From positions 124,001-188,000 of the forward strand of contig NIVC01001666.1 in the NCBI GenBank assembly GCA_002269645.1: a stretch of DNA of 64,000 nucleotides, in the 5' to 3' direction. The position numbers and the translations under genes are program-made. The stretch is from Macrostomum lignano. Its lineage: Eukaryota. Under the pieces are notes generated by a model. That model was not told where the DNA came from, searched no databases, and saw nothing but the letters and a program-made list of their open reading frames with translations. Shown here in pieces: positions 1-33,020 of the stretch (positions are counted from its first letter, which is position 1; each line of letters starts with the position of its first letter).

Positions 1-289
1 TACATGCTGGTATGCATTTTGTAAATTGTGGTGTACTTTGTGTACATTTCGGTGTACATTGTAATTTGCATTTAGTCCCATATTTTAGATTCTCAGTTTT
101 ATATGTGCAAATAGTTGAGCAAAGTTAGAAACTTGAGCTGCACAATTATTAAAACACATTGATTGCGTGCAAAGTGTACAGAAGTCTAAACTACAAGGTT
201 CCAGTACATTAAAAAAGTACATTAGGTAAGCATACTCTTGAAATTCACACCGTTTAAAAAGCGGCTAAAACGTACACAGAGCTAAAAGC

Positions 290-520
290 ACATCACTTAA
301 AGTACATCCAGAAAGTACATTCATAAAGTACAGCCAGAAAGTATACTCATTATAGTACATTCATTAAAGTACACCCACAAGTATATTCATTATAGTAAAT
401 TCATTAAAATACAGCCAGAAAGTATACTCATTATAGTACATTCACTAAAGTACAGCCTGAAAGTATACTCATTATAGTACATTCACTAAAGTACATCCAG
501 AAAGTATATTCATTAAAAGT
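290..520. repeat. Degenerate ~40-bp tandem repeat (AAAGTATACTCATTATAGTACATTCA-type), probably intronic in the CROT-like gene
   Basis: Recurring aaagtac/aaagtatactcattatagtacattc motifs read directly from the sequence. Confidence 0.7.
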
Positions 521-604
521 GCATCCGATTAAACGCGAAAATTTAAACTTCGCATCACTGCAAAAACTAAAGCTCCTTAACCCCCTTCCCCAGAAATCTC
601 GCAG

Positions 605-1096
605 CCCACTAGCACACCTGGCTCTTAGCTCGTTGTGCCGATCGTGCGCCGCCAAGATGGCCGTCCGCGCCTCCGCCGTGGCCGCACCGCCGGCCGCTGT
701 CACAGCCCGGCACATGGCCACCGCCTCCGCCGTGCATGACCGAATGGTCTCGGTGCGACCCCGATGAAACTGCCTGGTAGTGGCCGTCTGGTAGGTCGGC
801 GCTGGCCTGCCGCCGTGGGCGCGCCAATAGGCCAGCTGCAGAGCCAGCTGCACCACCGTGTCCGGGTGCAGCCGCAGTCTGCGCAACTCCGACCGGCCGA
901 AATCGTTGAACTCGTGCGGCAGAGCGTCCAGACTGGCTCGTTGCGACGCGTTCTCGGCCAGCCCTCTGGACGACTCGACCATGAGATGGTTGTCAAGGAT
1001 TAAGCGAAGCTCGACTGGCACTGCCGGTGGGCCCGAGGCCGCCTCGCTGCTGTGGTGCCGCTCACATGGGTCCTCAGGGCCGCCCTCGATTCGGCC
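605..1096 (-). CDS. CROT: Carnitine O-acyltransferase (CROT-like), coding exon 3; 3' boundary uncertain (possible donor at 617); the gene probably continues left of the window
   Basis: Translation has ...DTVVQLALQLAY...TYQTATTRQFHRGRTETIRSCT, the family motif YETAxTRxFxxGRTETxRSCT. Phase-0 acceptor ccacccgcgcag at 1098-1097 matches the exon-2 donor. Confidence 0.85.
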
Positions 1097-1124
1097 CTGC
1101 GCGGGTGGGCGAGGTGCAATTTGT

Positions 1125-1790
1125 ACATGATCTAATCTGTACATGATCTAATCTGCACATGATTGAATCTGTACATGATCTAAACTGTACATGATCGAAT
1201 TCGTACATGATTGAATCTGTACATGATCGAATTATTACATGATCGAATCTGTACATGATTGAGTTTGTACATTATTGAATCTGTACATGATCGAATTTAT
1301 ACATGACATAAACTATACATACCCTAAACTATACATGACCTAAACTATACATACCCTAAACTATACATGACCTAAACTATACATGACCTAAACTATACAC
1401 GACCTAGACTATACATGACCTAGACTATACATGACCTAGACTATACATGACCTAGACTATACATGACCTAGACTATACATGACCTAAACTATACATACCC
1501 TAAACTATACATGACCTAAACTATACATGACCTAAACTATACACGACCTAGACTATACATGACCTAGACTATACATGACCTAGACTATACATGACCTAGA
1601 CTATACATGACCTAAACTATACATGACCTAAACTATACATACCCTAAACTATACATGACCTAAACCATACATGACCTAAACTATACACGACCTAGACTAT
1701 ACATGACCTAAACTATGCATGACCTAAACTATACATGACTTAAACTATACACAACCTAGACTATGCATGACCTAAACTATACACAACTTG
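1125..1790. repeat. 16-bp minisatellite (CTATACATGACCTAAA / TGTACATGATCGAATC) filling CROT intron 2
   Basis: About 40 tandem units occupy most of the 743-bp intron 1097-1839. Confidence 0.9.
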
Positions 1791-1839
1791 CACAGTCTAA
1801 ACTGTAAATTTTGACATCAACAATAGCAAGCAGCCTCAC

Positions 1840-2434
1840 CTGAGTCTTATAGATCTGGCCTTCAACATAGTAGGTCATCAGCGCGATAGTCATCCCGTCC
1901 ATAGGCGTGTGGCCGCAGTTATTCAGCCACACGCCATCACCGGTGACCATCAGGTTGCAGGACTTATCCGGCACCACAGATTGAATATCTCCGGTCAGGG
2001 CCAGTTCCAGCAGCCGCTTGTTGCTGCAGCCGCGCTCGTCCAACAGCAAGCTGAGCACGAATATTGCCTGCTCAACCAGGTCGAGATTGCGCTGATTAAC
2101 TGGACTGAGGCTGCCCAAATGCCGTCTCGCCTCGAACCAATCAGGCCGAGGAAGGCCGTACAGGCCGGACGCTGAACCGGCACTGGAGCTGGCATCGCCC
2201 ATCTCGCTGCTGTCAGCCGATGACTCAACAGTCTTCACCAGCCTATCCAGCTGCCTATAGTACTGAGCAACAGTGTAAGGCTGCTCAGCTTCATCCAACA
2301 GGTCTAGCGAAAACATGCGACCGCGGATTAGCACTAGAAAATGTCTGGGCGATGCGCCCTCGCTGCGAGGCCGGAAATGACTGGCCAGGGTGTCCGCCTG
2401 GCGGCCAGGCAACTGGCAGGATGAGAAGTAGCGC
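1840..2434 (-). CDS. CROT: CROT-like coding exon 2, containing the catalytic His region (NNCGHTPMDGM)
   Basis: RYFSSCQLPG..., IEQAIFVLSL and DKSCNL...GHTPMDG match choline/carnitine acyltransferases. Acceptor cgccgcag at 2436-2435 (phase 2) and donor CAG/GTGAGG at 1839 (phase 0). Confidence 0.9.
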
Positions 2435-2574
2435 CTGCGGCGGGGTGGGGGCGATGATGGCAGATCTGTATAGCTTGTTGGGGATCTCTGAAAGATTATG
2501 GACTCCTTAAGCATGGGATCTGTAAGATGAGGAATAATTTTCAAGGTATGCGATCTAGGGCGTGGGGTCTAGAG

Positions 2575-2819
2575 GTATGGGATCTGGGGTGTGGGGTCTG
2601 GGGTCTGGGTGTGGGTTCTGAGGTGTGGGGTCTATGGTATGGGATCTGAGAGTATGGGATCTGAGGGTATGGGATCTGGGGGTATGGGATCTGAGAGTAT
2701 GGGATCTGGGGGTATGAGATCTGAGGGTATGGTATCTGAGGGCATGGGATCTGGGGTATGGGATCTGAGAGTATGGGATCTGAGAGTATGGGATCTGAGA
2801 GTATGGGATCTGAGAGTAT
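2575..2819. repeat. 15-bp minisatellite (GGGATCTGAGAGTAT), left half of an array split by the transposon
   Basis: The same unit resumes at 13470-13640. Confidence 0.9.
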
Positions 2820-2860
2820 TCCGTATAGAAAATTTATGGTCACACTTTTCGGTTGTGACC
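2820..2860 (+). repeat. Left TIR with GGTCAC-N11-GTGACC motif pair
   Basis: Direct comparison with the reverse complement of 13429-13469. Confidence 0.9.
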
Positions 2861-3150
2861 GTGCCGTTACCCTGAAATGGTAACGGTGACTATTTTGTAA
2901 CCATTTTGTGACCGTTCCCCTATGGTCACGTATGTGACCGTGCTTTGTGACCGTGTCTTGTGAAGCGCCGAATGAGCGCCTAGAAATACATGGCCGGAAA
3001 ATCACATATAATGTGATTGTTAGCATATTGTTCAGTAGTTCAGAACTTCAATAGCCACTTGTACTTCACGTAGCTGCCTGTACCGTTAAAGCATGTATGG
3101 TCATTCCCTCTCTGTAACACTTTTGCGACCCTCGCTTCAGTGATCCACTG

Positions 3151-3783
3151 ATGGACCACTGGTCCCACGCAATATCGTGCGCCGTCTGTGCGGCACTAGA
3201 AGAGGAAAATCGGGTAATGCGGGCCGAATTGCACCGACTGCGAACCCCTGATCGAGCAACGTCACCTATGTTCGGTACATCCGCAAGTTTGCGTCGGAGG
3301 CGGGCAATAATGGAGTGTGATGAGCTGCCACCTACGCCAGTTATGGCGCTTGCATGGCCTTTCACTGCAGGGTCAGAGACCCAGGGCCCCGACGTCACCG
3401 CCGAAGACGGCGCATCTGAGACTCAGGGCCCCGACGTCACCGCCGAAGACGGCGCATCTGAGACTCAGGGCCCCGACGTCACCGCCGAAGACGGCGCATC
3501 TGAGACTCAGGGCCCCGACGTCACCGCCGAAGACGGCGCATCTGAGACTCAGGGCCCCGACGTCACCGCCGAAGACGGCGCATCTGAGACTCAGGGCCCC
3601 GACGTCACCGCCGAAGACGGCGCATCTGAGACTCAGGGCCCCGACGTCAACGCCGAAGACGGCGCATCTGAGACTCAGGACCCCGACGTCAACGCCGAAG
3701 ACGGCGCATCTGAGACTCAGGGCCCCGACGTCACCGCCGAAGACGGCGCATCGTCAACGGCTGAAGGCAGCAGCGTTGGGTAA
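3151..3783 (+). CDS. Transposon ORF1: CxxC + short coiled coil followed by nine 14-aa acidic repeats (SETQGPDVTAEDGA); function unknown
   Basis: ATG-initiated 210-aa ORF inside the element with an in-frame 42-bp repeat at ~3375-3750; CAVCAALEEENRVMRAELHRL looks like a heptad segment. Confidence 0.55.
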   Translation: MDHWSHAISCAVCAALEEENRVMRAELHRLRTPDRATSPMFGTSASLRRRRAIMECDELPPTPVMALAWPFTAGSETQGPDVTAEDGASETQGPDVTAEDGASETQGPDVTAEDGASETQGPDVTAEDGASETQGPDVTAEDGASETQGPDVTAEDGASETQGPDVNAEDGASETQDPDVNAEDGASETQGPDVTAEDGASSTAEGSSVG

Positions 3784-4122
3784 TAGATATGATACGTGTG
3801 CGCCGTCAGAGTATAATTGTTATGCCAGAGAATATGCATGCAGTTAATGAATGAATTCCTAGGAATATCTAAAGTCGTATCTGTGATTTGTAGCCGTACC
3901 TAATAATTTTTCTGCCTGTTTTGTGCAGCTTATTAATCACGAAATACACAGTAAAGTAAGGTGAACGCGTAAGCTTCCTTTCTGAATGCGTGTTTGTGTG
4001 TTCATTTGACTTTGCTCAACCATGCTTTGCTGCTCTGATTGTGCAAAGTGAGAATAGATGCCTTACTCTGAATTGCATAATGTCAACACTTAAACCCGCT
4101 CTGCAGTTTAACATGTGACAAC

Positions 4123-6938
4123 ATGAGCGACATAAATGATCTAAGTGATGACGAAAACGTCGACTCGGTGCTGGAGAGGGCGTGGCAGAAAGTGAAAACG
4201 CTTCAAAGACGGTCAAGAAATCGGCGTTTCCGAGAGCGCCGACGCCGTCTCCGAGAACAGCAGTTGCTGTTCAATCGGCGCCAACAATGGTTACACGGAC
4301 AAGTGCCTGGTGAGGCTGGTCCCAGTGGAGCCGCTGTAGCTGTTTCGGGTACGAGGAAAAGAAAGCGATCATCTAGCAGCAGCAGCAGCAGCAGCAGCGA
4401 GTCAAGCGCCAGTGACAGCGAGCCAAGCGCCAGTGACGGTGAGCCAGGCGCCAGTGACGGCGAGCCAGGCGCCAATGACGGTGAGCCAAGCGCCAGTGAC
4501 AGCGAATCAAGCGCCAGTGACAGCGAGCCAAGCGCCAGTGACGGTGAGCCAAGCGCCAGTGACAGCGAGTCAAGCGCCAGTGACAGCGAGTCAAGCGCCA
4601 GTGACAGCGAGTCAAGCGCCAGTGACAGCGAGCCAAGCGCCAGTGACAGCGAGCCAAGCGCCAGTGACGGTGAGCCAAGCGCCAGTGACGGCGAGCCAGG
4701 CGCCAATGACGGTGAGCCTAACGGCGTTGAAGGCGCCGCTGACAGTGGCGGCAGCAGCAGCGATGACGAACGTGCAACCGACGCAGCCAAGTTGCAGCGC
4801 CTCATTGATATGCCCGCCTATGAAGGTGCAACGCAGTCATATGCGACAATAGCGACACGCGTGCAGAAGCTAGCCATAGAGTTAAAGTTATCAGACAAGG
4901 ACATTCAAAAGTTGCTGTCCTACACGGGCAATATACTGCCGGAGAATGCAGCATTTCCGCACACGACGCATCGGTTGATTAAATTTCTTGAACTGACGCC
5001 ATTCTCCTACAAGAAGAGCACACCTGTTCTGTACTGTATGCTTTGCGAACACGCAATCGTTCCCAAGGAAGCAGTCAACTGTCCGTATTGTCGCGTCCGC
5101 ATTGTGCCTTCAGCTGTGGGAACATTCTGGCAAATGGACATACGCAGTCAATTGCGATTACTGATAGAAGATTGTCGCCTGCTTCGGCACGTAATTTTTC
5201 CGGTGGATCAGCCCGCTCACGCGAATCGGCTACACATGGGAAGCAGTGTTGCTTACGCTGAATTCAAGCGGTCGATTGATTTGGGTGCGCGAAGCGACCT
5301 CACCTACATTGTGTGTATTGACGGATTTCCTGTCTTTAAACGAGCAACAATGGAGCTCTGTCCGGTCTACCTGAGTATCAACGAGGTGACGGACAAAATG
5401 AAGAGCCGATTTGTACTTGTGTGTGGCGTATGGGCAGGCAAACGCAAATTGCGCTCTACGGCATACTTGCCGTGGCTGGTGGAGCAGCTTAAGTCATTGC
5501 GTTCCGAAGGTATCACATTCACACGCGGTGGTGGAGCCGACGGCAGGCAGTGTGGAACATTGCGATTTCATCCTTATATGTTTATTATGGACGCTCCGCA
5601 AAGAGCAGAAACTGAGTGCATACGGCAGTTCAACGCTGATACGGCTGCGAGATGTGCTATACCGTCACCTTGCACGACACAGACCGCGGAGGTAACGCTA
5701 GGATCTTCCCAGAGACACTTTCGGATGCCGCCCTACAAGCCGCAGTAAATGCGAACGTTACGCAGCTCAATGCGAGAAACTTGGCGGACACCGTCATGCT
5801 GGCCAACACGAAGCCCATTAGTCGTGAACACAATCTAGGCGTCGTGGGTCTATCACCGCTCTGTCGTCTAGAAGGCTTCGACTACGTGAGAGGCTGTCCG
5901 CCATGTTATTTGCACCAACTGCTGACTGGCTTGGTGCGCCGTATTTTTGAGCAGTTGTTCCTGCCTATCGGCAAGAAGCCATCAAGGCTGAGCGCCGCTC
6001 CGAATATGTCCAGGCATATCGCCGAAGTGGATGCTCGTCTCGCATCGCTGCACATCCCTTCGTCGCATCAAAGGAGGCCGCGCACAATGCACGAACTGGG
6101 ACATATCCGAGGACATGAACTGGAGACTCTGCTTCTGGTTTATGCTCCAATGGTTCTGGACGGTGTTCTTCCCAGGGACCACTTCGACCACTTCATGCTC
6201 CTTTCCTCCGGCATCTTTACGCTAGCCATGGAGGGTACGAGCCACGCGCAGATATTGCGAGCAGACGCAACTCTGAAGCACTTTTACAGGGCACTGAGTG
6301 CTCTATATGACGACACCATGCTGACGTTAAATGCACATCAAGTGGCTAAGCACTTCGGTATGGTTAGCATGCTATTCGGCCCTATTTACAGAGTTTCCGC
6401 TGGCCTCTTCGAATCCACGCATGGGAAATTGCGATCGAACATCCATGGAACGCGTCACGCCGCCATAAGGCTGGTGAAAGTAGTCACTCGCAAAGCAGCG
6501 ACTCGCTACCTCTTGTCACTGTTGGGCATTGAAGCGAAAGTCGTCGGCGCGCAGAGCAGATTTGATCTGCCCGCAACTACGACGCCTAATGGCGTGCGGC
6601 TGTTCCAAGACAGAGCAAGGCGTGTCTACACACGGCTCGTGCTGCCCGACGGCTGTGAATTGGAGGTATTCCGGCCGCAATTGCGCTTCACACGATACGC
6701 GTCCTGCTTCATTGCCTTTTCTGTCAACACCGTCGGCGAGTCTCTTCGCTTCGAGTTCGGCCGAATCGAGTCGATCTGTGTGGTGCAGGCACATGCGAAG
6801 CTGAAGGTGCGGCGACTGTTAACTGAGGAGTACATTGAGCCACGGGACAACCCGCTGTATCGGTTTTTTCGGAAGGCGCCTGCATGGCGGCTGTGCACTA
6901 CTGCATGTGCGACGACTGCTGCGCAGTCCTTTTGTTGA
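4123..6938 (+). CDS. EnSpm/CACTA-type DDE transposase (~940 aa if repaired), split by a 1-nt deletion at ~5640
   Basis: CxxC..CxxC (YCMLC...CPYC), IDGFPVF (D, 5320), MDAPQRA (D, 5590), QFNA/YGCEMC across the frameshift, RRPRTM, LLLVYAPMVLDGVLP, LTLNAHQ, GP..SAGLFES (E, 6411). N-terminus has a basic NLS-like stretch and a 21-bp SASDSEP repeat. Confidence 0.85.
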
Positions 6939-7318
6939 CGTGTCCCGGTTCTACTTTGAAGTCGATCCGATGGAGACTGCAGTAGTTCGGCCGTGCTACG
7001 TCTCGGACAGTCACGTGGCCTTCCTACCGCATTTGCAATTCTCTTACGCTGCATAGATCGATAAGGTATTGCCCAATAATTGTACGTATAAATAGTTTAT
7101 ACTATCTAGTATATACACCCGAAGCAGCTATATTTCTTGAAGTGTAACTGTATAATACGTATTCGATCGTATACGATCAGCGGTCAAACCCCATCCAAAA
7201 CACTTGCAGCGTTCGCGACTGCGTGGGGCCCAATAGGAAGCCTATCTGGCTATCAAAAGCAACTGCCCACCTGTACGGGAACTGGGCGCCCCCTCAGCGT
7301 CCAGACCCGTACAAGTGC

Positions 7319-7558
7319 ATGCGAGTGAGCGGTGGCGGTGGCGCCGACTCTGGCGGTGGCGCCGACTCTGGCGTCAGCAGGCCGGTTAATAAACGTATTT
7401 TGCAGTCGGAAAGTGTGCCGTCTCCGGTGTACAACCGTTCTATTAACGTCTGCGAGCATGAGGTTTACGTGAACAAATATTGGTACAATGATGGTATGAA
7501 CGACTTGCTGTCAGAGGCGGCAGAGGATGCCGAGGGGACCATAAATACCACTGTGTGA
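7319..7558 (+). CDS. Small transposon ORF (79 aa) or first exon (7319-7493) of ORF3
   Basis: TATAAATA at ~7088, ATG at 7319, GTATGA donor at 7494 in phase with the acceptor at 7929, AATAAA at ~7745. Confidence 0.4.
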   Translation: MRVSGGGGADSGGGADSGVSRPVNKRILQSESVPSPVYNRSINVCEHEVYVNKYWYNDGMNDLLSEAAEDAEGTINTTV

Positions 7559-7889
7559 CCTCCAGTACGGTGTAACAGTAATATTGTAATTGTATAACTA
7601 TATTTTACAATAATTGTAACAATAATACAACAATAATTTATATTGCTACTGCTGTTTCCGTGATCGGGTTTCTCGAACCACACTGAAGGTCCAGTAGTTA
7701 ATAAATTGTTAATTAAATAGTCGCTGTTCCTTCCGCTGTTTCAAATAAAATAATTTTAGTTTCTCGTTTTAGTTTTTCGTTTTAAATAATTTTAGTAACT
7801 TTTATAACACTAGAAAATTATACAGTGCTGTCACTGTTGGGATCAGTAATTAATCGGTAGGTATATATAACTACCCACTACGTAATTAC

Positions 7890-8966
7890 ATGTGCATTTT
7901 ACGCCACGCCTCCCCCTTTAAATTTCCAGCGCACACGGGCAACATAGAGCGCGAAGAGTTTGTTGTACAGCTGCTTATGCAGCTGTCTGCCGACATAGCC
8001 GGTTTACGGCTGGATGTGCGTCTGCTGACTGCGCAGCAGATGCAGCTAATGACCCGCCTATCGGCTCGACCGTGCCCAGTCGGCGACGCTGCCCAGCCGC
8101 CAGTCGGCGACGCTGCCCAGCCCCCAGTCGCTGCCCAGCCGCCAGTCGGCGACGCTGCCCAGCCGCCAGTCGGCGACGCTGCCCAGCCGCCAGTCGCTGC
8201 CCAGCCGCCAGTCGGCGACGCTGCCCAGCCCCCAGTCGCTGCCCAGCCGCCAGTCGGCGACGCTGCCCAGCCCCCAGTCGCTGCCCAGCCGCCAGTCGGC
8301 GACGCTGCCCAGCCCCCAGTCGCTGCCCAGCCGCCAGTCGGCGACGATCCGGATGTCGACGCAAGTGATAAATATTGCGAGCATTGCATCATCCTTCTCG
8401 ACAAGGGCAGCGATTGGCCAGAGGCATGGCACTCGATGCAGAGCAGCGACCCTGCTGTGCGTCAACTTAAAAATATTCTCCTTGACACAGAAAGTGACTT
8501 CCACGACGGCCTTCCCCAACCGAAAGCGATTTTTGCTGGCCGAGTCGCGCTGACTACGGCTCTCTGGTTCGTCGCTTTATATAAGCATGATGACGCCTAT
8601 CCCTGTGTCCGCAGTGTCGTAGACATCTACTGCGAACACGTGCGTGACACCGGCGTCGTCCGTACTGCTGGTCCTGGCCCGTCCAATAGTCGACAAGCTG
8701 AGTGGCGCTCGTTTCTTAATCAGAGCGAGAGACGCGTATGGGCAGCCGCCAAGAAAGCAAATATTCGACCGCCCGAAGAGACTCGCCGCGGCGCCTATGG
8801 CCAAATCCGAGGCGGTCGCTCCGCCAGCCTGCGTCGACTGGTCCGTGTAATAGCCGGTCTCATCGATTGCCGCTGGAACATTCATTATGCGTGCTTCGCA
8901 GACGCCTTTCTGGCGGTTTTATCGTGCTACTGGGACTTTGGTCCTGCTGTGTCACCAGCTAACTAG
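7890..8966 (+). CDS. Transposon ORF3: coiled coil, PVGDAAQP/PVAAQP repeats and a ~200-aa helical C-terminal domain of unknown family
   Basis: 358-aa open frame with non-repetitive C-terminus, GC-rich between AT-rich spacers, followed by AATAAA at ~9130. Confidence 0.65.
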   Translation: MCILRHASPFKFPAHTGNIEREEFVVQLLMQLSADIAGLRLDVRLLTAQQMQLMTRLSARPCPVGDAAQPPVGDAAQPPVAAQPPVGDAAQPPVGDAAQPPVAAQPPVGDAAQPPVAAQPPVGDAAQPPVAAQPPVGDAAQPPVAAQPPVGDDPDVDASDKYCEHCIILLDKGSDWPEAWHSMQSSDPAVRQLKNILLDTESDFHDGLPQPKAIFAGRVALTTALWFVALYKHDDAYPCVRSVVDIYCEHVRDTGVVRTAGPGPSNSRQAEWRSFLNQSERRVWAAAKKANIRPPEETRRGAYGQIRGGRSASLRRLVRVIAGLIDCRWNIHYACFADAFLAVLSCYWDFGPAVSPAN

Positions 8967-9345
8967 CTATATAGACTTCCATAGCTCTATGTCTGTGCCT
9001 GTCTACGCCGATATAGGGCGCACCCGTCTACGCCGATAGGGCATGTTATATATACAATTCTTCTTTGCTACTGTATATAACATCGTCATCCGGTGTTTAT
9101 AAAAAGTAAATATCTCCACTACTATTAATAATAAAAGCCGAATCCTGCTTCCTTACTTTTGTTTATTGGCCGGCGTATTTGTTGCTCATTTATTTCTCCG
9201 GTTCATTATACACCGTGTACCTGCGTAATATGTATATATACGAAAATATCCCATGTACTTAGGCTCCCGTTTGTCGTCACTAAATTCCCTTTTTACTACG
9301 ACGATCTGCCCCCTCGCCTTTCCAGGTCGTGATTAATTCTCTACT

Positions 9346-10923
9346 ATGAGCTCCAGTAGTAGATGCAGTCGATCGCTTGCGACAGCGGAGTCAGCACCAA
9401 GGGAAGGCGCATCAGCGCCGGGCAAAGGCACTTCAGCGCCGGGCAAAGGCACTTCAGCGCCAAGCAAAGGCGTATCGCGTTTCTGGATTGTGGAGTACGC
9501 CGAGGGGGATGGCGGGCAGCTTGGAGTTTACTCTGAGAAGTGCATCCTTCCGGACTCAAGCAGAGACAGTAGCCGGGTACTGTCAGTGGACGACTTCGTC
9601 ACTCTTCGGCCAGGAAAGCCTGGCAGCAAGGTGTACTGTGTTCGACTCCTCAAGGGCCCATATAAAACTAAGCTGGCCGCCGAGTCCCATGTGAACTCAT
9701 GTTTGCCAGCACAAAACACGGGCATTACGCTGCCGAACGGGTGTGCCTCTTGTACTTCACTTCGCCAGGAATTGGCGTCGCTGCGCGCCATTGTGGACAA
9801 CCTGCAGTCCAGCAGTGACGAAGAGCGTGAGAGCCGACGCCGGCAAATAGACTCTCTGGAGAGCCAGCTAGAGGACGCTCAGCTAGAGTCCCAGGGTTAT
9901 AAGGAGAAGATGGAATTAGCAGAACGCAAAAATGCGGAACTCACCAAAGAACTCTCACGTTTGCTTAACTCAACTGAATCAGGACCTGAAAACGGAACCC
10001 AACCAACTGCTACTGTTTCCGGTGCCGACACTGCTTCGCAGAGGTACGCCGCAGACCTGCAAGAGGCGGTCTTTGCTGCTATTGAGCTGCTGCAGAATGC
10101 AGTAGTTGTCCAAGAGGGGAACGCAGGCGCAGCAGCAGCAGCTTCTACAGACTTTTTGCGCATCCGCCTGTCCGACATACCAGGTCTACCAGCTTCAAGC
10201 GCCAATCGGCGGACAATCAACGCACTGGACTGTCACGAGGCTATGCCATTATCGGCGGAGGACGACGCAAACTTGGATGCCAGCGCTGAAGCTGCGTCGG
10301 CGCTGCGACTTCAGCAAGAGGCTGCTGCCGCCAAAGGGGCGTATTATTTTAAGCGCCCGGAGTCCAGGCGTCACCGTCAGCGAAGACAACTATGCGTCTA
10401 TTCGACAAATATCCCGGAAATACTTGGGGGTGGCCTGAAAGTTTCGCATGCCAAGGAACTGCTTCGCACCCTGTATAAAGCTGTCTTCAGCACGGAGGAG
10501 CTGTTAACTTGCTCCTACACGGAACGCAAAACCAAACGCCTCGCCGATAAGGCGAAGGCGGCTGTGCCGTCCGATAAGAAGAGAGCAATTGAAGGCTTCG
10601 TGAAGCGACTCAAGCTGCCTGTCAAAATCCCACAGGCAACCTGGTCGACGGTATTCAAAGGCACCGCCTACAGCGCGAAGCGCAAGCACGGCACTGATAA
10701 AGAATCAAATAAAGATGCAGGCAGCCAGCAGCGCAAGAAGAGGAAACGGGCTGCTGGTGCCGGTGCTGCCCCGACTTCTGCCGCTGCCCCGAGTTCTGCC
10801 GCTGCATCGAGTTCTGCCGCTGCCTCAAGTTCTGCAAACAGCGACGAGTCTGCCAGCGGGGATGTCGAGAAAGCAACGAGCAACGAGCCCGTTGCAACCT
10901 CAATTGAGCTTGCCGTCCATTGA
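9346..10923 (+). CDS. Transposon ORF4: N-terminal beta-rich domain + coiled coil + BEN-domain-like region + basic NLS-like tail
   Basis: 525-aa ATG ORF. AKELLRTLYKAVFSTEELLTCSYT...KAAVPSDKKRAIEGFVKRL...W...AKRK (~10440-10690) follows the BEN pattern (RxLxxxxFxxEEL..S...K..AI). Recognised by eye, not by HMM. Confidence 0.7.
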   Translation: MSSSSRCSRSLATAESAPREGASAPGKGTSAPGKGTSAPSKGVSRFWIVEYAEGDGGQLGVYSEKCILPDSSRDSSRVLSVDDFVTLRPGKPGSKVYCVRLLKGPYKTKLAAESHVNSCLPAQNTGITLPNGCASCTSLRQELASLRAIVDNLQSSSDEERESRRRQIDSLESQLEDAQLESQGYKEKMELAERKNAELTKELSRLLNSTESGPENGTQPTATVSGADTASQRYAADLQEAVFAAIELLQNAVVVQEGNAGAAAAASTDFLRIRLSDIPGLPASSANRRTINALDCHEAMPLSAEDDANLDASAEAASALRLQQEAAAAKGAYYFKRPESRRHRQRRQLCVYSTNIPEILGGGLKVSHAKELLRTLYKAVFSTEELLTCSYTERKTKRLADKAKAAVPSDKKRAIEGFVKRLKLPVKIPQATWSTVFKGTAYSAKRKHGTDKESNKDAGSQQRKKRKRAAGAGAAPTSAAAPSSAAASSSAAASSSANSDESASGDVEKATSNEPVATSIELAVH

Positions 10924-10937
10924 TCACAGTAGCCGCG

Positions 10938-11880
10938 ATTGCTCATTTTATCGAGGCCAAACGGCGCTAATTGCAGTACAATTGCTCATTTTATCGAGGC
11001 CAAACGGCGCTAATTGCAGTACAATTGCTCATTTTATCGAGGCCAAACGGCGCTAATTGCAGTACAATTGCTCATTTTATCGAGGCCAAACGGCGCTAAT
11101 TGCAGTACAATTGCTCATTTTATCGAGGCCAAACGGCGCTAATTGCAGTACAATTGCTCATTTTATCGAGGCCAAACGGCGCTAATTGCAGTACAATTGC
11201 TCATTTTATTGAGGCCAAACGGCGCTAATTTTTGCAGTACGACTGCTCATTTTATTGAGGCCAAACGGCGCTAATTGCAGTACGACTGCTCATTTTATTG
11301 AGGCCAAACGGCGCTAATTGCAGTACAACTGCTCATTTTATTGAGGCCAAACGACGCTAATTGCAGTACGACTGCTCATTTTATTGAGGCCAAACGACGC
11401 TAATTGCAGTACGACTGCTCATTTTATTGAGGCCAAACGGCGCTAATTGCAGTACGACTGCTCATTTTATTGAGGCCAAACGACGCTAATTGCAGTACGA
11501 CTGCTCATTTTATTGAGGCCAAACGACGCTAATTGCAGTACGACTGCTCATTTTATTGAGGCCAAACGGCGCTAATTGCAGTACGACTGCTCATTTTATT
11601 GAGGCCAAACGGCGCTAATTGCAGTACAATTGCTCATTTTATTGAGGCCAAACGGCGCTAATTGCAGTACGACTGCTCATTTTATTGAGGCCAAACGGCG
11701 CTAATTGCAGTACAATTGCTCATTTTATTGAGGCCAAACGACGCTAATTGCAGTACGACTGCTCATTTTATTGAGGCCAAACGGCGCTAATTGCAGTACA
11801 ATTGCTCATTTTATTGAGGCCAAACGGCGCTAATTGCAGTACGACTGCTCATTTTATTGAGGCCAAACGACGCTAATTGC
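10938..11880. repeat. 43-bp tandem array, 22 copies, starting ~15 bp after the ORF4 stop
   Basis: Unit TGCTCATTTTAT(C/T)GAGGCCAAACG(G/A)CGCTAATTGCAGTAC(AAT/GAC); period measured from 10941, 10984, 11027. Confidence 0.95.
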
Positions 11881-12669
11881 AGCAGTACGATCGCTCTTTC
11901 TTCGCCACGCATCGTGATTCATATATATGTATATGAATATATATTATGATATATTCTTATACCTGATATATTCTTATTCACAATATATATATATATATTG
12001 AGGCGGAAGGCCTTTTAGTTCAATAGATGGAATGGCAGCGAAGAGTTTGTGCTGCTTTGCGCGTGTATTTATATATTTACAAACAACGCCAGATTGAGGG
12101 GCCAAGTCAAGGGAGGTGCGAAACAGGTGGCGTGGCGTGATTGGCTACGCCAACCCCCTGGCTTAGCGAGCCGGCTAGCGCGGTACGCAACCACCCCACC
12201 TCAGCTAGACAGAGGTTGGGGGTTTTCCAGTGCGGCTGCACTGGTGCTGCCGGTCGCGTACAGTCTGGCCGCCCCAATATATATATATATATATGAATCA
12301 CAATATGTTCCTTTCTCTTCATTTATTGCCTGCGTACATTTAAAAACCTCCTATACCTTCCTAATTTACATACATACATACATACATAGCATTTTTAACA
12401 GTAGCTTGGGCGGTTTTGCTCAGCTCTATCGACTAAATAGTCATATCAGTTTGACTTCGCGTTCTCGACCCTTCCTGCTTTTAACCTTCGCGGTATATTC
12501 ACGTGTCCTGTGAACGGTCACTGTCACACTCTCTGGTCACAGTACTTCGACGTGAGTGTCACATGACATTCACAACTAACGGTCAAACTGAATGATCACG
12601 ACTGTCAAGGGGACAGTCACCGTTTATGGTCAAATGTTGCTCATAGTGTCGTCACACAACCACAGCTAT

Positions 12670-13285
12670 GCGGCAGTTACAGTTGACGGTTACGGTATGC
12701 TGACAGGTGACGGTCACAATATACGGTTACACTTGACGGTCACGGTATGGTCACGGGTGACGGTCACAATATACGGTTACAGTTGACGGTCACGGTATGG
12801 TCACGGGTGACGGTCACAATATACGGTTACAGTTGACGGTCACGGTATGGTCACGGGTGACGGTCACAATATACAGTTACAGTTGACGGTTACGGTATGC
12901 TGACAGGTGACGGTCACAATATACGGTTACACTTGACGGTCACGGTATGGTCACGGGTGACGGTCACAATATACGGTTACAGTTGACGGTCACGGTATGG
13001 TAACGGGTGACGGTCACAATATACGGTTACACTTGACGGTCACGGTATGGTCACGGGTGACGGTCACAATATACGGTTACACTTGACGGTCACGGTATGG
13101 TCACGGGTGACGGTCACAATATACGGTTACACTTGACGGTCACGGTATGGTCACGGGTGACGGTCACAATATACGGTTACAGTTGACGGTCACGGTATGG
13201 TGACAGGTGACGGTCACAATATACGGTTACAGTTGACGTTGACGGTCACGGTATGGTGACAGGTGACGGTCACAATATACGGTCA
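12670..13285. repeat. Right subterminal 50-bp array (~12 copies) rich in GGTCAC/GGTTAC motifs
   Basis: Unit TGACGGTCACAATATACGGTTACAGTTGACGGTCACGGTATGGTCACGGG; period from 12721 to 12771. Confidence 0.9.
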
Positions 13286-13428
13286 CATTGCACGGTAACA
13301 CAAATTACTTACTTTCTTTTCATGTGACCATGGACGGTCACATTTCACGGTCAAGTGCGTCTCGGGGCACGGTCACCGGTTGACCTTCACGGTCACAAAG
13401 TACGGTCACCGCACAGTCGCACATCAAT

Positions 13429-13469
13429 GGTCACAAAAATTTTTGGTGACCGTCAATTTTCTATACGGG
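13429..13469 (-). repeat. Right TIR with GGTCAC-N11-GTGACC motif pair
   Basis: Ends ...AATTTTCTATACGGG, followed by the TSD TAT. Confidence 0.9.
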
Positions 13470-13640
13470 TATCGGATCTGAGAGTATGGGATCTGAGAGT
13501 ATCGGATCTGAGAGTATGGGATCTGAGAGTATCGGATCTGAGAGTATGGGATCTGAGAGAGTATAAGATCTGAGGACATGGGATCTGGTGTATATCTGGG
13601 GTACGGGTTCTGGGGACATGGGATCTGGTGACGTGGGATC
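13470..13640. repeat. 15-bp minisatellite, right half of the split array
   Basis: cggatctgagagtat / gggatctgagagtat units. Confidence 0.9.
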
Positions 13641-13679
13641 TGTAAGATGTGACACTGGCCATGCACAGACCACACTCAC

Positions 13680-14188: not shown

Positions 14189-16807
14189 TGCGTCTGAGTT
14201 CAGCAAGCCGAAATTTAAACAGAGGATACATATAGTGCAAAGTGCTATATTTGGTTTGAATCTTTCCTTGGGATTTGAATCTATACTTGGGATATAATGA
14301 GTTGTTACAAATGAAAAAAAGATGAAAAAAGGTAATGGGGACAGGGTAATGCCAAAAATGGCAGATGAAACTAATAGCTAAAACAATAGACAATAAAAGC
14401 CAACACAGGCAATACAAGTACAGATAAAGTAGCAAGTACATAATTATTGTGTAAAGTACATAATAAAACCAAGCAATATTACAAATAACATTTATAGCAT
14501 AGAACTAAAGATAACGACAAAATCAATTAGCTACTTGGCTTATTATATACCTTACTATGATTGATTAACTTTATCCCTAAACTAATATAAATATAATTTC
14601 TTTAGCAAAATTGGTTGTTTTTAGTACATGATTTAAAAAAACTCAAATAATTAATCTTTAACACAATGCATGTTTCTACTAGTTTATATGAACATACTAA
14701 TGAAGATACTTTAGTGCTAGATATTTTGGTACAAGATGGTTTTATATCAAGTCCCTTTAATTCATGTATACTATAATATATATTATAATCTGCTAGTGAA
14801 TAATGGCATATTAATATAATTCATTAAAAGAAGAATTATCTACAAACCCTTTTTTCTATATTCTACAATCTTTTGTTGAATTCCAAAAATATAGTGGGTA
14901 CCTCTAAATTTGTTATAGTAGTGTTTTCTAAAACCAGTGTTGGGTACTAGTCCATTAATAAGCATTAATCTTAATGAGCATTAACAGACTAAGATTAAGA
15001 ATTAAGAATTTTTGCACTAACAGTTTGACAAAAATGGGCATTAATCATTTTGTGAGTTAGGAACAAATTTATGGCTAATGTCAATGACCAAAGATGCAAA
15101 AAAACAAAAACTCTGATATGTTGGATATGTCAGACATTTTAGAGGTGTCTAACAGTCTGAAAATAAGTTAAATCATTATGAATATGTTAAAATTTATCTA
15201 AGTGCCTAATTAATCTCTTTATTTATGATTTATTTATAAACTTTATTGAATTAAAATTGTGAATTTTTTGCTTGCACATGAGCATTGCTTTGATCTACAC
15301 TTCTTTCCCAATTTTTGTAACTCTGCTGTACCTGCTAATACTATTGAAACAACATTTCTATTTATATTTATTAACTACAGATACTAAAATAGCTAGATGG
15401 GCCACTCAGCAAATTTGCATTTAAGCTACTTTCAGTTCAGTAGCAAATTAAACTGAAGCATTTTAATGCATTTTAAAGCCAAGGCTCATTTTATTGGCTC
15501 TTACCTCCCAGCCTTACCTTACCTTCTTATTGCCTTTTTTGGAATCTATATAACTAAACTTGACTATGTACCATTCTAGCCTAAAGCGGCCATGTACATT
15601 TCAATGGACTAGCTAATGTACATTATTGCTAAACCAATTAGCAAGTTGTTTACACTTATAAGCTTAGGCTTCTGAACATATCAAAGTCATTTTAGCTGCT
15701 TTTATTTTTTTATATGTCCTATTTCTATTTGACTAGCCAATAAAAAATCCTGGCCAATAATCCAGGGGTGAGATTTTGGAACTGGCAATCTAGGGGTGAG
15801 ATTTCAGAGCTGGAAATCTTGTAGTGAGATTTCAAAGCAGACAATTTATACATGCAACATGACATTCAGTTTGTCCTTTGCCAATTTGCATAAGCTGCAT
15901 CTGTCTTTTCTACAACAATCCACTGTGTGCTTTTTCTGTCTTAATAATCACCCACCACTACTAGCATGCAAAGTAGAAAAGACCTTACTTGGATCTACTA
16001 ATATAATTGGTTATTGTTGGACTCTGACTGACTCTGATCTTTTTTGGACTGTGGGCTCTGGGGTTGGTGCTTGGGGTGGGTTATTTGTCTGGTGAGGGTT
16101 TGCGTACTTTGTGTATATCGTTGCTCTTTCACTATTCCCTCGTGCATGCCTTATCTCTGTCACCCACCCCAATGCTATGCTGCGATGCTTATTAATGTGT
16201 TTTCTGATCTTAGGTTGACTTCAATAAACTTTTGTCACAACTGAGAGCTAAAGCTATTGACTTTCAGTTATATTGGTATGCATTTTGGTTATATCTTTTT
16301 TTCAAGTTTATTCTCAGAAATGATTTGCCTTCCATTCTTTGTTTTTTTCTTTTAATAACTGTGTGCAACTTAAAAAGGTACACATACCAATAGACAGGTA
16401 GCTCACCCAATGATGGACAATTAGCTCATCACTAATGGACAGGTAGATCATCCACTGATGGACAGGTAGCTCACCCACTGATAGACAGGTAGCTCACCCA
16501 CTAATGGACAGGTAGCACACATGAATTCTCTTGTAAAACTTACTGTCTAAAAACTTACAACTACTCAAATTCACAGTATAGTTTTTATTTTTATATTTAA
16601 TACAAGTTCTCTACTGAAAGTGAGGCACTGGAGCCCCAATCTGGCAGTTAAATAATAAATAATAAACAGCATATTAAAAAACTCTCATTCAATGATTTGT
16701 CTAGTAGGGAAAAAACAAAAAATCTATTGATGAGCTCTTTGGTTTATTCTATAGTTTTATATATTTTGATAAGCACAAGTATATGCTAAGTAAATATTGA
16801 TAGGAAG

Positions 16808-19959: not shown

Positions 19960-21860
19960 CATGCCGCTCTTCTGTGCCTATGCGCCCATGGCTGCGCGCC
20001 CAGAGGAGCGCTGGCAGTTTCTGGAGTTCCTGTCAGCGCAGCTGGAGAAGATCGCTCAACTCGACACGTCGACACTGTACTGGTACTCGGAGACCTCAAC
20101 GCCGTCATGCGAAGGTCCGAACGCGCCCGCTTTGTAACGCCACGCGAAAACAACAGTACTAAAAATGCCCTAGTGTATTTCATGGACCGCCACGACCTGG
20201 TCTCAGCAAACACGCTGTTCAGGAAGCCGCTTCACAGATTGGCAACATTTGCCGGCTGTAAGCGGCCACGTCGGAAAGCGTGCGGAAAATTTGCTAGGAA
20301 GAGACTCGCACAGCTCGACCATATGCTGCTTCGCCAGCGATCGAGAACGATGACGAGTGACTAACTGCGATACGGTGGCCCCGTTAGCAGTGCGGTCAGG
20401 TCATAGGCTGCACTACTGCGACCTGCGCCTGAGGGACCCGCTATATCGACCACCGAAAAAACAGCCAAAGCGCTACTTCCGCGCCCTACGCGACCCGGTT
20501 ACAAGTGGCCGCTTCTGTCTGGCATTTGCCAAAGCGCTGGAAGAACGGCCAGATACAACAACCCCAGCCGAGTATCCGGACATCAGTGCCGCCATCCAAG
20601 CCGCCGCCACCAAAACTCTGCCGCTGGTGAAGCCAGCAGAAAGGAGTCGCCCAGTGTGGCAGAACGACGAAGTGCTGCAGCCGGCCCGGCTGACAGTGGA
20701 GAGACTGCGGAGGAGCGGACAGCCCTCGGAGAAGGAAGAGGAGACTCTAGCGGAGACATTTAAGCAAGGACCACTAGGATTTAAAGCCGGGCAACGCGCC
20801 GCGGTGGAGACCGCTATTTAGGAGATCACGGACGTCTTTCCCGCCAAAAAACCGCATGCCGTCTGGTCGGTCGTCAATCAGCTGACAGGCCGCAAGAGAC
20901 GCAACGCTCTGAACCTGGCGGTTGACACGCCCGAAGAGAGGCGAAACGAGCTGCGGACTTTCTCTGGTATCGTCAACGCGCCCCCTCCGCCGCAAAGGGA
21001 CGATATGTTATTGCCCACGAAGGTTGAGGTGCCAGAGGAGAGCTCCTTTAACATCAGCCCCATCACCATCGACGAGGTGCTCCAACTTGCAAAGAAGACG
21101 CCAGGCAACAAGGCTACTGGACCCGACGACATGCCTGAGGAGCTGCTGCGCCTCCCGCAGGTCGCGCTGGAAGTCACGCGAGTGATGAACTACGTGCTAG
21201 CTGGGGGCCCCGCCCCTGCTGAATGGCGGATCATCGGGATATAGTCGGGATCCCAAAGAAACCAGCTTCGATCCATCAAAATCGAAGAACATCGCGGTGC
21301 ATGGGCGCTTGCCTGAGGCGCATTTCGCACTGTGCGGACTGTCCTGCAGTGCCCCGCGCTGCCGGATCGGCTGAGAAGGTGGCTGTTCCAGGCCGTCATA
21401 CAAGCCGTCCTCCTTTACAATGCTGAAACGTGGACACTGACCGGCCCACAGAAGCGGCAACTCGACGCCGCTCACACTGGACTCCTGAGAGCCGCCTGAG
21501 AGTGTCCACTTACTCGCCGATCGCCACCACCACCACCAGCAATGACGAGCTATACCGACGGGCCCAGCTCTCCCGACCCAGCCAGCTGCTGCACATTCGG
21601 CGCCTACAGCTGGTTGGCCACGTCATCCGGGCAGAGCAGTACTGCCCTGAGCCGCTTCGAGACGTGCTGCTGCTATCCTTTCAAGGGCCGCGGCGGCTTG
21701 GTCAGGCGAGAAGTCTGCGTCGTCGACCTGCTTCTAAGAGACGCTGAAATCTCTGACCCTCGCGGACTCGCTGTTCCGCGCAAATCTACGCTTGCGCGTG
21801 CCTTTTGACAGCAACCCAACTTGGCTTACCCAGGGTTGCTGTAGTTTGTCGTTGTTGTTG
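19960..21860 (+). mobile_element. 5'-truncated, frameshifted RTE-like non-LTR retrotransposon lacking the RT core
   Basis: APE endonuclease motifs CAYAP, VLGDLNA, SANTLF, QLDHML, SGHRL; RT N-terminus PITIDEV..NKATGPDDMP..EW..IVGIPKK; RTE-type C-terminus AVLLYNAETWTL..LDAAHT; (TTG)n-like tail at ~21845-21860. Confidence 0.8.
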
Positions 21861-22138
21861 TCGTTAATTAGTCATTCAGTTTTTGATCTACAATAAAGCT
21901 GCAAAAAACGTATCTCAAAATTCTACGTATAAATTTGTACACTATGTGAGATTCCTAAGGACTTTCTCGGATAATTTAAAAAAATCAAAATAAAATTACA
22001 TGAACACTCAAAATTAATAATCTACGAGCCGTATATATTTGCAATGTACATCAGTCGATTTACATCACGATTATTTGCAGATGAATACCTCCACCCCTAT
22101 AACAACCACACAACAGCGAAAACATTCACGTCTCTTAC

Positions 22139-22156
22139 ATCACTTCCTTCCCTAAA
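22139..22156 (-). other. Candidate polypurine tract followed by TGTAAG, the putative start of a 3' LTR at 22139
   Basis: Minus strand TTTAGGGAAGGAAGTGA/TGTAAGAGAC ~170 bp after the integrase ORF; no matching 5' LTR found. Confidence 0.4.
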
Positions 22157-22306
22157 TTGAGGATCATAAAAAAACTATGAAAAGAGGCAGTAAAACCACG
22201 AGAATTAAAAACTAGCAAAAATGAATCAGTAAATTAGTTTTGCGCAGCATAAAAATCAGGCGGTCTTCGAGTCCTTGCAGAACGCCGAGGGCCGACTGCG
22301 GGCGGC

Positions 22307-23542: not shown

Positions 23543-24620
23543 CAGGTGTTCTGCGTCATCTGCAGCCTTGCCACGTCTAGGCCTTTCTTTGTCCGAGGAG
23601 CACTTGTCGAGCCGCCGCTAGCACTGGGTCGTCAGCCTGCGCTACACGGATGTCGTTGTCCGACCAGGCAGGGTGCAGCCGGGTCGCCGCTGCTCGGCTC
23701 AGCGCGTCCGCAACCACGTTTTCGCGACCAGGTCTGAAGAGCAGCTTGAAGTTGATCTCCACCAGAAACGTAATCCATCTGGCTAGCCGTCCTTCTGGCT
23801 CCTTGGTGTTGAGCAGCCCTTGCAACGGCTTGTGGTCGGTGAAGACGAGAATTTCGCCAGCGGACGCCAAGTAGTTCCGGAAATGCTTCATCGCCCAGAC
23901 CACCGCAAGAAGCTCTCTGTGGGTAGTCGAGTAATTGCGCTCCGCTTTGTTCAGGATTCTCGACGCGTAGGCTACCGGACACTCGGCATCTTCGTGGAGC
24001 TGGCTCAGGACGCCGGCGATGGCCACTCCGCTGCTGTCACAGCACAACCGGAATCCCTTGGAGAAGTCAGGCAGCTTCAGTACGGGTGGTGCCGACAGAG
24101 CTAACTTCAGCTTCCACAGAGTGTCATCGCACTGAGTTGTCCATTGAAACTATCGACTCTTCTGAGTCGCCTGATGAAGCGGATTAGCGATGCTGGCGAA
24201 GTGCGGAACGAAACGCCGGTAGAAGCCCAGCATGCCGACAAGCCGGCGAACATCCTCAGCGCATTCGGGTATCGGGATGGACTGGATAGCGCTGACCTTG
24301 TCCTGAGTTGGTCGAATGCCTTCTGCCGAGATTTTGTGTCCTAGGTACTCAACCTCCTGGAAGCAGAAGTAGCTCTTGCGTTTGTTCAATTTGAGGCCGG
24401 CAGACTGCAGTCTTCCCAGGACCTGTTCCAGTGTTTCCGCATGCTTCTCGAAGGTCTGACTAAACAGAATCAGATCGTCCATGTACGTGAGCACCTCTGT
24501 CCAGTTCAGGCCGGCCATCGTTAGGTCCATCAGGCGCTGAAAGGTTGCCGGGGCGTTGCAGAGGCCGAACCCGAGTTTCCTGTACTGCATCAGGCCCTGC
24601 GTGGTGTAGAAAGCGGTCTT

Positions 24621-32985: not shown

Positions 32986-33020
<35 letters not shown>

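Follow-up and report, generated by a model that had tools for sequence, protein, structure and literature searches.

Several described transposon systems resemble the locus studied here, and most of them belong to the CACTA/Mirage/Chapaev/Transib (CMCT) clade, which is defined by transposases with the D, D, C(2)C, H(3-4)H, E signature and whose target-site duplications (TSDs) are 2-5 bp long (PMC12730594). Maize En/Spm, with its proteins TnpD and TnpA, has a DDE-clade transposase in which the motifs C(2)C and H(3-4)H occur, a 3-bp TSD, short terminal inverted repeats (TIRs) next to which lie numerous subterminal copies of a short motif, and a second element-encoded protein (PMC1636069, PMC12730594). 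An element sharing these features was analysed in a 64-kb stretch of the genome of the flatworm Macrostomum lignano (contig NIVC01001666.1, positions 124,001 to 188,000); this whole stretch is called the window, and all coordinates refer to it unless another locus is named. The element spans 2820-13469 (10.65 kb), the same coordinates as those given by a first-pass annotation of this DNA. With a probability of about 60%, the locus is a divergent animal CMCT cut-and-paste element in which an En/Spm-like two-component system is combined with lineage-specific extras, and in which the protein of the open reading frame (ORF) ORF4 is the counterpart of TnpA.

The differences from En/Spm were considerable. 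The window element has termini of the CCCG type and no match to Transposase_21, and its ORF4 partner, which combines Tudor-like, coiled-coil and BEN-like parts, showed no relation to TnpA. Two further genes, ORF1 and ORF3, are present here. The genes of the window element are separate ORFs with their own ATGs, and the alternative splicing by which systems of the En/Spm type make a second, repeat-binding protein from one transcription unit was hinted at only by the M. lignano gene model P0005. SmTRC1 of Schistosoma mansoni (PMC1636069) shares with the window element a flatworm host lineage, a TIR starting with CCC, an internal tandem-repeat region and the transposase clade. However, SmTRC1 is a ~4.7-kb element with a Transposase_21 domain, a 54-bp TIR, a 2-bp TSD and one ORF (PMC1636069), whereas the family described here has no Pfam match, a 3-bp TSD, elements of 8-14 kb and a conserved second gene. 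Fungal CMCT/KDZ transposons that harbour genes for TET/JBP dioxygenases belong to the same broad clade and carry an extra gene related to the state of DNA or chromatin, which provides a precedent for chromatin-related accessory genes (PMC12730594); no TET/JBP gene was found here, and the hosts, termini and accessory genes differ. The resemblance to Arabidopsis VANDAL elements and their VANC proteins is one of concept only, in that an accessory protein acts on short repeated motifs in its own element; VANDAL belongs to the Mutator superfamily, and no sequence or fold relation was found among the Pfam and PDB matches. Transib and RAG1 share the C(2)C and H(3-4)H motifs and a spacing of ~20 residues between His and Glu, and they gave the best structural matches, although the fold-search alignments were just 9-11% identical. 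Transib elements have 5-bp TSDs and different termini. CA...TG termini (CACTA in plants) hold for the clade "in most cases". Because the classical CACTA features (CACTA termini and Transposase_21) failed, the element was filed at the level of the CMCT clade and regarded as a divergent lineage of animals. The published literature, to which the comparison was confined, yielded no description of such a gene set.

Element ends, target site and transposase

The ends of the element read (T/C)CCGTATAG. The left end, at 2820, starts with TCCGTATAGAAAATT..., and the right end, at 13469, closes with ...AATTTTCTATACGGG. A repeat finder identified inverted arms of 23 nt with 91% complementarity (2821-2843 and 13446-13468), and the 14-mer CCGTATAGAAAATT occurred exactly twice in the 64 kb, once at each element end, compared with a chance expectation of 0.38 matches with two or fewer mismatches. 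The insertion site is a 15-bp satellite, GGGATCTGAGAGTAT, and this host satellite provided an unusually clean test of the TSD. The element and 0-6 bases of its right flank were deleted, and the satellite register was then scored at lag 15. Deletion of the element plus three bases gave 29 of 30 matches, whereas deletion with 0, 1, 2, 4, 5 or 6 bases gave 16-21 of 30; the TSD is therefore the 3-bp TAT. Both this TAT and the TAA of the related element L003 lie within the 2-5 bp of the CMCT clade, at the 3 bp of EnSpm. Intact ends and a TSD had been claimed by the first-pass annotation, and both were confirmed by the inverted arms and the satellite register. Its label CACTA-like was not supported as far as the ends are concerned, since the termini read TCCG.../...CGGG in the window and CCCG in the three related elements (L001, L002 and L003). 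A CCC-type TIR start was found at the right end of the window element and at both ends of L001, L002 and L003; animal CACTA-superfamily elements of Schistosoma, Tribolium and Aedes start with CCC (DeMarco et al., PMC1636069).

The transposase gene is now a pseudogene with three reading frames (4123-5636, 5640 to about 6860, and about 6870 to 7056). The first frameshift, at about 5637-5640, lies outside any homopolymer, and the second is close to a T6 run (6853-6860). A conserved tail, ...SDSHVAFLPHLQFSYAA, is encoded by the last piece, and the product ends in ...FLPHLQFSYAA, the same as in the relatives. Introns were considered as the cause of the frame changes and were rejected, because the codons on either side form an unbroken alignment with intact homologues; the changes are thus frameshifts. 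Owing to these two frameshifts the copy is probably non-autonomous, as judged from its reading frames, and the transposase would have to come in trans.

A homologue search with the joined frames returned four proteins only. P0001 is an M. lignano protein (44% identity, E 2e-168), P0002 is intact (863 aa, 38% identity) and comes from a marine metagenome contig of Tara Oceans, and P0003 and P0004 are more distant (25-29% identity). The D/D/C(2)C/H(3-4)H/E blocks aligned across the window protein and all four homologues, and the motif signature of the CMCT clade is thereby present in the window transposase. An AlphaFold model of P0002 was built from a six-row alignment, with a mean predicted local distance difference test (pLDDT) score of 42.8. 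In this model the two catalytic Asp residues were located on strands and the Glu on a helix after an all-helical insertion, which fits an RNase-H-like core. The top 10 PDB matches of the model in a Foldseek search were RAG1 (E 5e-7 to 1e-3) and the Helicoverpa Transib (HzTransib). At the level of sequence, a transposase profile searched against PDB sequences retrieved neither RAG1 nor Transib. The Pfam scan of the window ORFs gave low-complexity or sub-threshold matches only, with the catalytic cores by themselves no match was obtained for the window even at E up to 10, and P0003 showed only a weak match to DUF4218 (E 0.007). When JGI metagenome contigs and IMG/VR were scanned with transposase patterns, no relative came up. 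The placement of the transposase in the CMCT clade is supported by the motifs and the TSD, by the subterminal repeats and by the best matches of the low-confidence fold model, and their agreement upheld the earlier view that the locus is an animal CMC element.

Subterminal repeats, related elements and the ORF4 partner

The 8-mer ACGGTCAC was found in 33 exact copies in the 64 kb (0.9 expected), all 33 of which were located at the element ends. Their orientation was symmetric, with the motif on the minus strand at the left end and on the plus strand at the right end. The shorter motif GGTYAC was counted 7 times at the left end, 51 times at the right end and 2 times inside the element, compared with 13 times in the other 53 kb. 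Short-motif subterminal repeats of the En/Spm type are therefore present at both ends. Since each unit of the 50-bp array near the right end carries four motif copies, this array is, by its repeat content, an expanded subterminal motif region, and its motif copies are putative binding sites. It was also the only DNA segment kept between the window element and L003. By analogy, these observations support an equivalence of the array with the En/Spm repeats to which TnpA binds.

The best relatives of the element came from one flatworm (M. lignano) and from marine metagenomes. L001 is a 13.9-kb M. lignano element (NIVC01002297.1, 9053-22906) with the TIR CCCGATTGAAAATC and the subterminal motif GTCGGCACT, which forms a 12-bp x 33 array at the right end. 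L002 is a 9.9-kb marine metagenome element (97-10043) with the TIR CCCGCTGAAAAAATCG and CCGG-type subterminal repeats. L003, which was reached via the ORF4 homologue P0005, is an 8.0-kb M. lignano element (NIVC01001566.1, 8857-16821) with a perfect 36-bp TIR, CCCGTATAAAACGAAACGGTCAC..., and the TAA TSD; its TIR opens with the same CCCGTATA as that of the window element. Two arrays of the ACGGTCAC motif occur in L003, a 51-bp one on the left and a 50-bp one on the right, and a 43-bp x 13 array follows directly after the ORF4-like gene. The transposase core is absent from L003, and the N-terminal region is kept (9974-10672). The gene order of L003 is transposase N-terminal exon, ORF3, ORF1 and ORF4, which differs from the order in the window. 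DNA similarity between the window and L003 was confined to the motif arrays (67-76%, with the same 50-bp period), and the window had no other DNA in common with the two M. lignano loci. On this sequence comparison, the architecture of the family is conserved while the subterminal motif differs by lineage. The closest relatives of all four genes (transposase, ORF1, ORF3 and ORF4) come from M. lignano, which by itself would point to a macrostomid flatworm, or a relative of one, as the host.

Two side observations concern L003. The deposited gene model P0005 (10001-15152) connects the N-terminal part of the transposase with the ORF4-like ORF and bypasses the ORF3- and ORF1-like segments, with the junction falling in a shared GAT tripeptide; it may represent En/Spm-style alternative splicing or an annotation artefact. 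Additionally, TTAGGG-type telomere-like repeats were found at 1550-1950 of this locus, ~7 kb from the element.

An ORF4 homologue was found in all three related elements. In L001 (19106-20374) and L002 (7509-8237 and 8575-9342), the ORF4-like ORFs were located 3' of the transposase, on the same strand and within the TIRs, and the homologue in L003 (13419-15149) showed 43-44% identity. Across the four elements the proteins are only 21-44% identical, and the DNA is no longer alignable. When 1.84 billion representative proteins were searched exhaustively with HMMER, ORF4 had only five relatives. These are P0005 (M. lignano, E 1e-57), P0006, whose sequence equals the ORF4-like ORF of L001 wherever the two overlap, and three short marine sequences. 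A word-indexed homologue search with ORF4 returned nothing, full-length ORF4 had no useful match among PDB sequences, and a BFVD fold search gave no significant hit, the best being a bracovirus protein (E 0.017). In L006, a more distant element of the P0004 type, no ORF4-like partner was found.

This distribution bears on the proposal that the accessory ORFs are captured host gene fragments (Pack-type transduplication) with no role in transposition. Host DNA capture is known for CACTA-type elements (PMC6379663), ORF1 and ORF3 are rich in tandem repeats, the gene order in the window is unlike that in L003, and the ORF3 of L003 contains an in-frame stop. However, ORF4 was retained in four elements in spite of the divergence of the proteins and the loss of DNA alignability, those of its five relatives with a readable context lie in such elements, and none of them resembles a host family. 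ORF1 and ORF3 likewise keep 30-41% protein identity amid DNA that has diverged past alignment. Host capture is unlikely for ORF4 because the gene is kept across very divergent elements and is near absent elsewhere, and as an account of the accessory ORFs as a whole it is considered improbable.

The AlphaFold2 (AF2) model of ORF4 had a mean pLDDT of 58.7. The N-terminal barrel in this model was matched by Foldseek to the Tudor domains of KDM4A/B/C (KDM4A = JMJD2A) and ARID4B with a probability of up to 0.99 and E values of 0.07-0.5. The C-terminal conserved block has the pattern LLR.L...F..EEL..CSYTGR...K..AI..F. When the family profile of this C-terminal region was compared with 177,635 PDB sequences, the top three were BEN domains (BEND6, NAC1; E 0.04-0.09). 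The L003 homologue matched Pfam BEN (PF10523) at 15.2 bits against a cut-off of 23.2, with E 0.025 for the full length and 0.0021 for the domain alone. From the models and profiles, ORF4 looks like a protein with a Tudor-like barrel, then a long coiled coil, and lastly a BEN-like domain for DNA binding. BEN domains bind DNA in a sequence-specific manner, and BEN proteins are mostly chromatin regulators.

If ORF4 is the TnpA counterpart, the transposase would cut at the CCCG termini and the BEN-like domain of ORF4 would serve to bind the subterminal repeats. Oligomerisation through the coiled coil could then pair or condense the element ends, and the Tudor-like barrel might contact methylated chromatin or the transposase, by which the transcriptional or chromatin state would be set. 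ORF1 and ORF3 would act as subfamily-specific helpers, and the CtIP/Sae2-type tail of ORF1 in the M. lignano relative L003 would point to double-strand-break processing.

Several observations weigh against this reading. No Pfam transposase family, Transposase_21 (PF02992) included, matched the window ORFs or P0001, P0002 and P0004, and the termini are not CA...TG. L001 and L002 show no TSD (flanks CAG/TCA and AAT/CCT) despite clear CCCG TIRs. The P0002 model is of low confidence (pLDDT 42.8, TM-scores 0.15-0.25), and its match to RAG1 and Transib rests on local structure letters; because the TM-scores were low, this fold match was taken as supportive and not decisive. The frameshift near the T6 run could be a sequencing or assembly error. 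The BEN, Tudor and SAE2 assignments are all under curated or significance thresholds, and the ORF4 of the window alone gave no Pfam match. Finally, the zinc-ribbon region of the transposase itself could be the binder of ACGGTCAC instead of ORF4.

The last of these points leads to a different division of labour, in which the zinc-ribbon of the transposase would read the subterminal repeats, and ORF4, together with ORF1 and ORF3, would form a VANC-like chromatin or anti-silencing module that reads or blocks repressive marks. The conserved CxxC...CxxC block is located 5' of the transposase core, the barrel of ORF4 has a fold typical of methyl-lysine readers, and the predominance of chromatin regulators among BEN proteins would suit such a role. 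Additionally, the observed/expected ratio of CpG reached 1.14 within the element, against 0.62 for the 53 kb of the window outside it, which could indicate a young or unmethylated element or just its base composition. Against the anti-silencing module, which the first-pass annotation had suggested and of which the chromatin-type domains of ORF4 are the only hint, no homology to VANC or to a known anti-silencing factor was found among the Pfam and PDB matches, the domain calls in ORF4 are sub-threshold, and the CpG difference may reflect only age or base composition. By analogy with VANDAL this arrangement is conceivable, but it is considered somewhat unlikely, and binding of the element ends by ORF4 is tentatively preferred.

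ORF1, ORF3 and the integrity of the copy

The first ~105 residues of ORF1 are conserved and consist of a CxxC followed by a helical heptad-like stretch. In a tblastn search, residues 2-106 matched L003 with 41% identity over 116 aa (E 1e-18). In the remainder of ORF1 a 42-bp array (3376-3752) codes for nine repeats of 14 aa, and no Pfam family was found for this protein. The ORF1-like protein of L003 (12211-13002) carries a C-terminal tail with the pattern CxxC...RHR...FF..P.T, which matched the Pfam SAE2/CtIP C-terminus (PF08573) at 18.1 bits against a cut-off of 19.8 (E 0.0057); the same protein had no useful match among PDB sequences. In the window, ORF1 has no SAE2/CtIP tail (CxxC ... RHR ... 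P..FW..FP.T), and stops are present in all frames between 3783 and 4120. A CtIP-like gene borne by a transposon would be unusual.

The conserved part of ORF3 is its C-terminal ~200 aa, of which residues 163-351 matched L003 with 30% identity over 210 aa (E 3e-16). Coding repeats of 42/66 bp are located at 8076-8346. No Pfam match was found for ORF3, nor any PDB match when its C-terminus was searched. Homologues of ORF1 and ORF3 were found in L003 only, and hidden Markov models of the two pairs detected no counterpart in L001, L002, L004 and L005. The 111-aa "small ORF" between the transposase and ORF3 had no homologue in any related locus examined; it is probably not a gene, as far as the comparison of sequences indicates.

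All long ORFs of the element are on the plus strand. Four of them have the coordinates listed in Table 1, and the transposase region is read as an ORF at 4123-5748 with another at 5652-6938 overlapping it in another frame. The GC content was 0.39-0.42 in the spacers, compared with 0.55-0.64 in the ORFs. AATAAA/ATTAAA sites were found 3' of the transposase and ORF3, and TATA-like sites 5' of ORF3 and ORF4. Neither a poly(A)-like hexamer nor a TATA-like site was present in the spacer 3' of ORF1, and no AATAAA was found after ORF4. In-frame tandem repeats occur inside ORF1 (42 bp), the N-terminus of the transposase (21 bp) and ORF3 (42/66 bp), and because of these coding repeats spurious ORFs in other frames or on the opposite strand stay open. 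In random 10.6-kb sequences of like composition, the median longest ORF was 199 aa, so that the transposase and ORF4 alone are backed by their length. Without their repeats, ORF1 (86 aa) and ORF3 (205 aa) stay within what chance would give, and it is homology that supports these two genes. An exact look-up of seven window ORFs in a collection of 15 billion proteins found none of them, and Rfam and tRNA scans of the element gave no matches.

These results modify the first-pass annotation in part. The co-oriented ORFs and the 43-bp and 50-bp arrays were located where it had placed them. Of its four to five ORFs, all do lie on one strand, but the transposase occupies three frames and the small ORF, without a homologue in the related loci, could not be maintained as an accessory gene. 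The AT-rich spacers with signals were reproduced as regards low GC content and the signals at the transposase, ORF3 and ORF4, but not for the spacer after ORF1 or for an AATAAA after ORF4. The element cannot be called complete, as had been stated, since the transposase has two frameshifts and ORF1 is without the C-terminal domain found in its relative. The test that it had suggested, whether all ORFs co-occur in independent insertions, came out positive for ORF4 in three TIR-bounded relatives and for ORF1 and ORF3 in one; by this recurrence within independent TIRs, these three accessory ORFs are not separate nested insertions.

A related question is whether the 10.65 kb could be a composite, that is, a short transposase element with unrelated nested insertions and satellites between its two ends. 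The AT-rich palindromic stretch downstream of the 43-bp array may be a small nested MITE (miniature inverted-repeat transposable element)-like insert, and the 43-bp array has no assigned role, both of which would suit a composite. In L003, a 43-bp x 13 array (15365-15935) has the same period and position as the 43-bp array of the window, and the units of the two arrays agreed at 18 of 43 positions at the best rotation, equal to shuffles. However, no internal TIR or long terminal repeat (LTR) pairs were found around ORF1, ORF3 or ORF4. A composite is highly improbable, because L003 repeats the gene set and the array order (the 43-bp array, then the 50-bp motif array) inside its own TIRs. A 154-aa ORF at 12049-12513 overlaps the palindromic stretch and is unsupported.

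Table 1. Features of the transposable element and its flanks in the window, in order of position.
Feature	Position	Strand	Evidence or remark
TSD, left copy, TAT	2817-2819		satellite register back only after removal of exactly 3 bases
Left TIR, TCCGTATAGAAAATTTATGGTCAC	2820-2843	+	base 1 is T; C at the right end and in relatives
Left subterminal region, 7 GGTYAC/GTRACC including 4 exact ACGGTCAC	2838-2965	-	motif scan
ORF1 (210 aa)	3151-3783	+	tblastn against L003 12217-12552
Transposase gene, now pseudogene	4123-7056	+	three frames; homologues P0001, P0002
21-bp x 15 coding repeat, acidic Ser/Asp/Glu-rich	4395-4718	+	analogous repeats at the same place in relatives
CxxC...CxxC zinc-ribbon-like motif, 5' of catalytic core	5035-5091	+	alignment; weak Pfam Zn_ribbon_15 match
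CIDGF, first catalytic Asp (codon 5320-5322)	5314-5328	+	alignment
IMDAPQR, second catalytic Asp (codon 5590-5592)	5584-5604	+	alignment
GCEMC, C(2)C motif, directly past frameshift 1	5643-5657	+	alignment
AHQVAKH, H(4)H motif	6333-6353	+	alignment
LFES, catalytic Glu (codon 6411-6413), 20 residues past second His	6405-6416	+	alignment
"Small ORF" (111 aa)	7223-7558	+	unsupported; sub-threshold Pfam match only
ORF3 (358 aa)	7890-8966	+	homology to L003 10689-11306
ORF4 (525 aa), accessory gene	9346-10923	+	homologues in L001, L002, L003
Tudor-like beta-barrel and helix, ORF4 residues 46-119	9481-9702	+	AF2 pLDDT about 80; Foldseek
Single long helix (predicted coiled coil), ORF4 residues 134-211	9745-9978	+	pLDDT about 90; begins at invariant CxxC (C133, C136)
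BEN-like domain, ORF4 residues ~366-447, LLRTLYKAVFSTEELLTCSYT...KKRAIEGFV	10441-10686	+	family profile; Pfam on L003 homologue
43-bp x 22 array, 13 nt past ORF4 stop	10936-11882		repeat finder; one place only in window
AT-rich palindromic stretch	11911-12304		two near-perfect inverted repeats, 24 nt, 92-96%
Right subterminal region, 49 GGTYAC on + strand (51 on both strands)	12501-13445	+	motif scan
50-bp x 12.3 array, four motif copies per unit, core of right subterminal region	12676-13296		repeat finder
Right TIR, reverse complement CCCGTATAGAAAATTGACGGTCAC	13446-13469	-	repeat finder, 14-mer count, end comparison
TSD, right copy, TAT	13470-13472		satellite register

Implications and surrounding sequence

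The RAG1-ancestral clade is well known for its transposases, and little is known about the accessory proteins of its animal members. In the family described here, ORF4 was kept together with the transposase at 21-44% protein identity, and the motif arrays in cis were likewise kept. The system could serve as a tractable animal counterpart of maize TnpA/TnpD, in a lineage that includes the transformable model species Macrostomum lignano. A broader proposal, which at present is distinctly doubtful, is that the element represents a previously undescribed animal lineage related to RAG1, Transib and CACTA, with an end-binding, chromatin-reading partner that co-evolves with lineage-specific motifs, and that some members carry a CtIP/Sae2-like repair-steering factor. 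Such a factor, if real, might open hairpinned flanks or favour homologous repair that restores the donor copy; it would be a transposon-encoded cofactor of DNA-end resection, and the lineage would possibly be a source of animal BEN-domain regulators. Should the BEN-like and CtIP-like calls hold, they would link transposons to sequence-specific BEN regulators and to double-strand-break end resection, host systems that may be rooted in transposons or exploited by them. Should they fail, the locus would still be of use in repeat annotation, as a clean reference for a transposase family that is divergent and invisible to Pfam.

Other features were noted in the remainder of the window. Remains of a Ty3/gypsy-type LTR retroelement were located at 20000-28000, in a region with a GC content of 0.54-0.58. 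They include an integrase ORF at 22307-23542 and a reverse transcriptase fragment at 25370-26404, both on the minus strand, with the domains Integrase_H2C2, rve, Integrase_p58_C and a partial RVT_1. At the end of an ORF at 32625-33323 on the minus strand, a Forkhead domain begins (PF00250, E 2.8e-9); the ORF probably represents an exon from a transcription-factor gene of the host. It is the strongest sign in the sequence of an animal host, and together with the retroelement remains it marks the window as eukaryotic and most likely animal. The ORF at 43389-45692 on the minus strand encodes 767 highly repetitive residues, and its many mutually inconsistent Pfam matches (MSG, bZIP_1, ice-binding and others), none of which has a stretch of its own, indicate low-complexity or coiled-coil repeats; this region shows an extreme GC skew of -0.45 to -0.55. 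Short-period satellites were found at 1118-1783, 2607-2819 and 13469-13642, comprising two 16-bp arrays and the 15-bp satellite that hosts the element.

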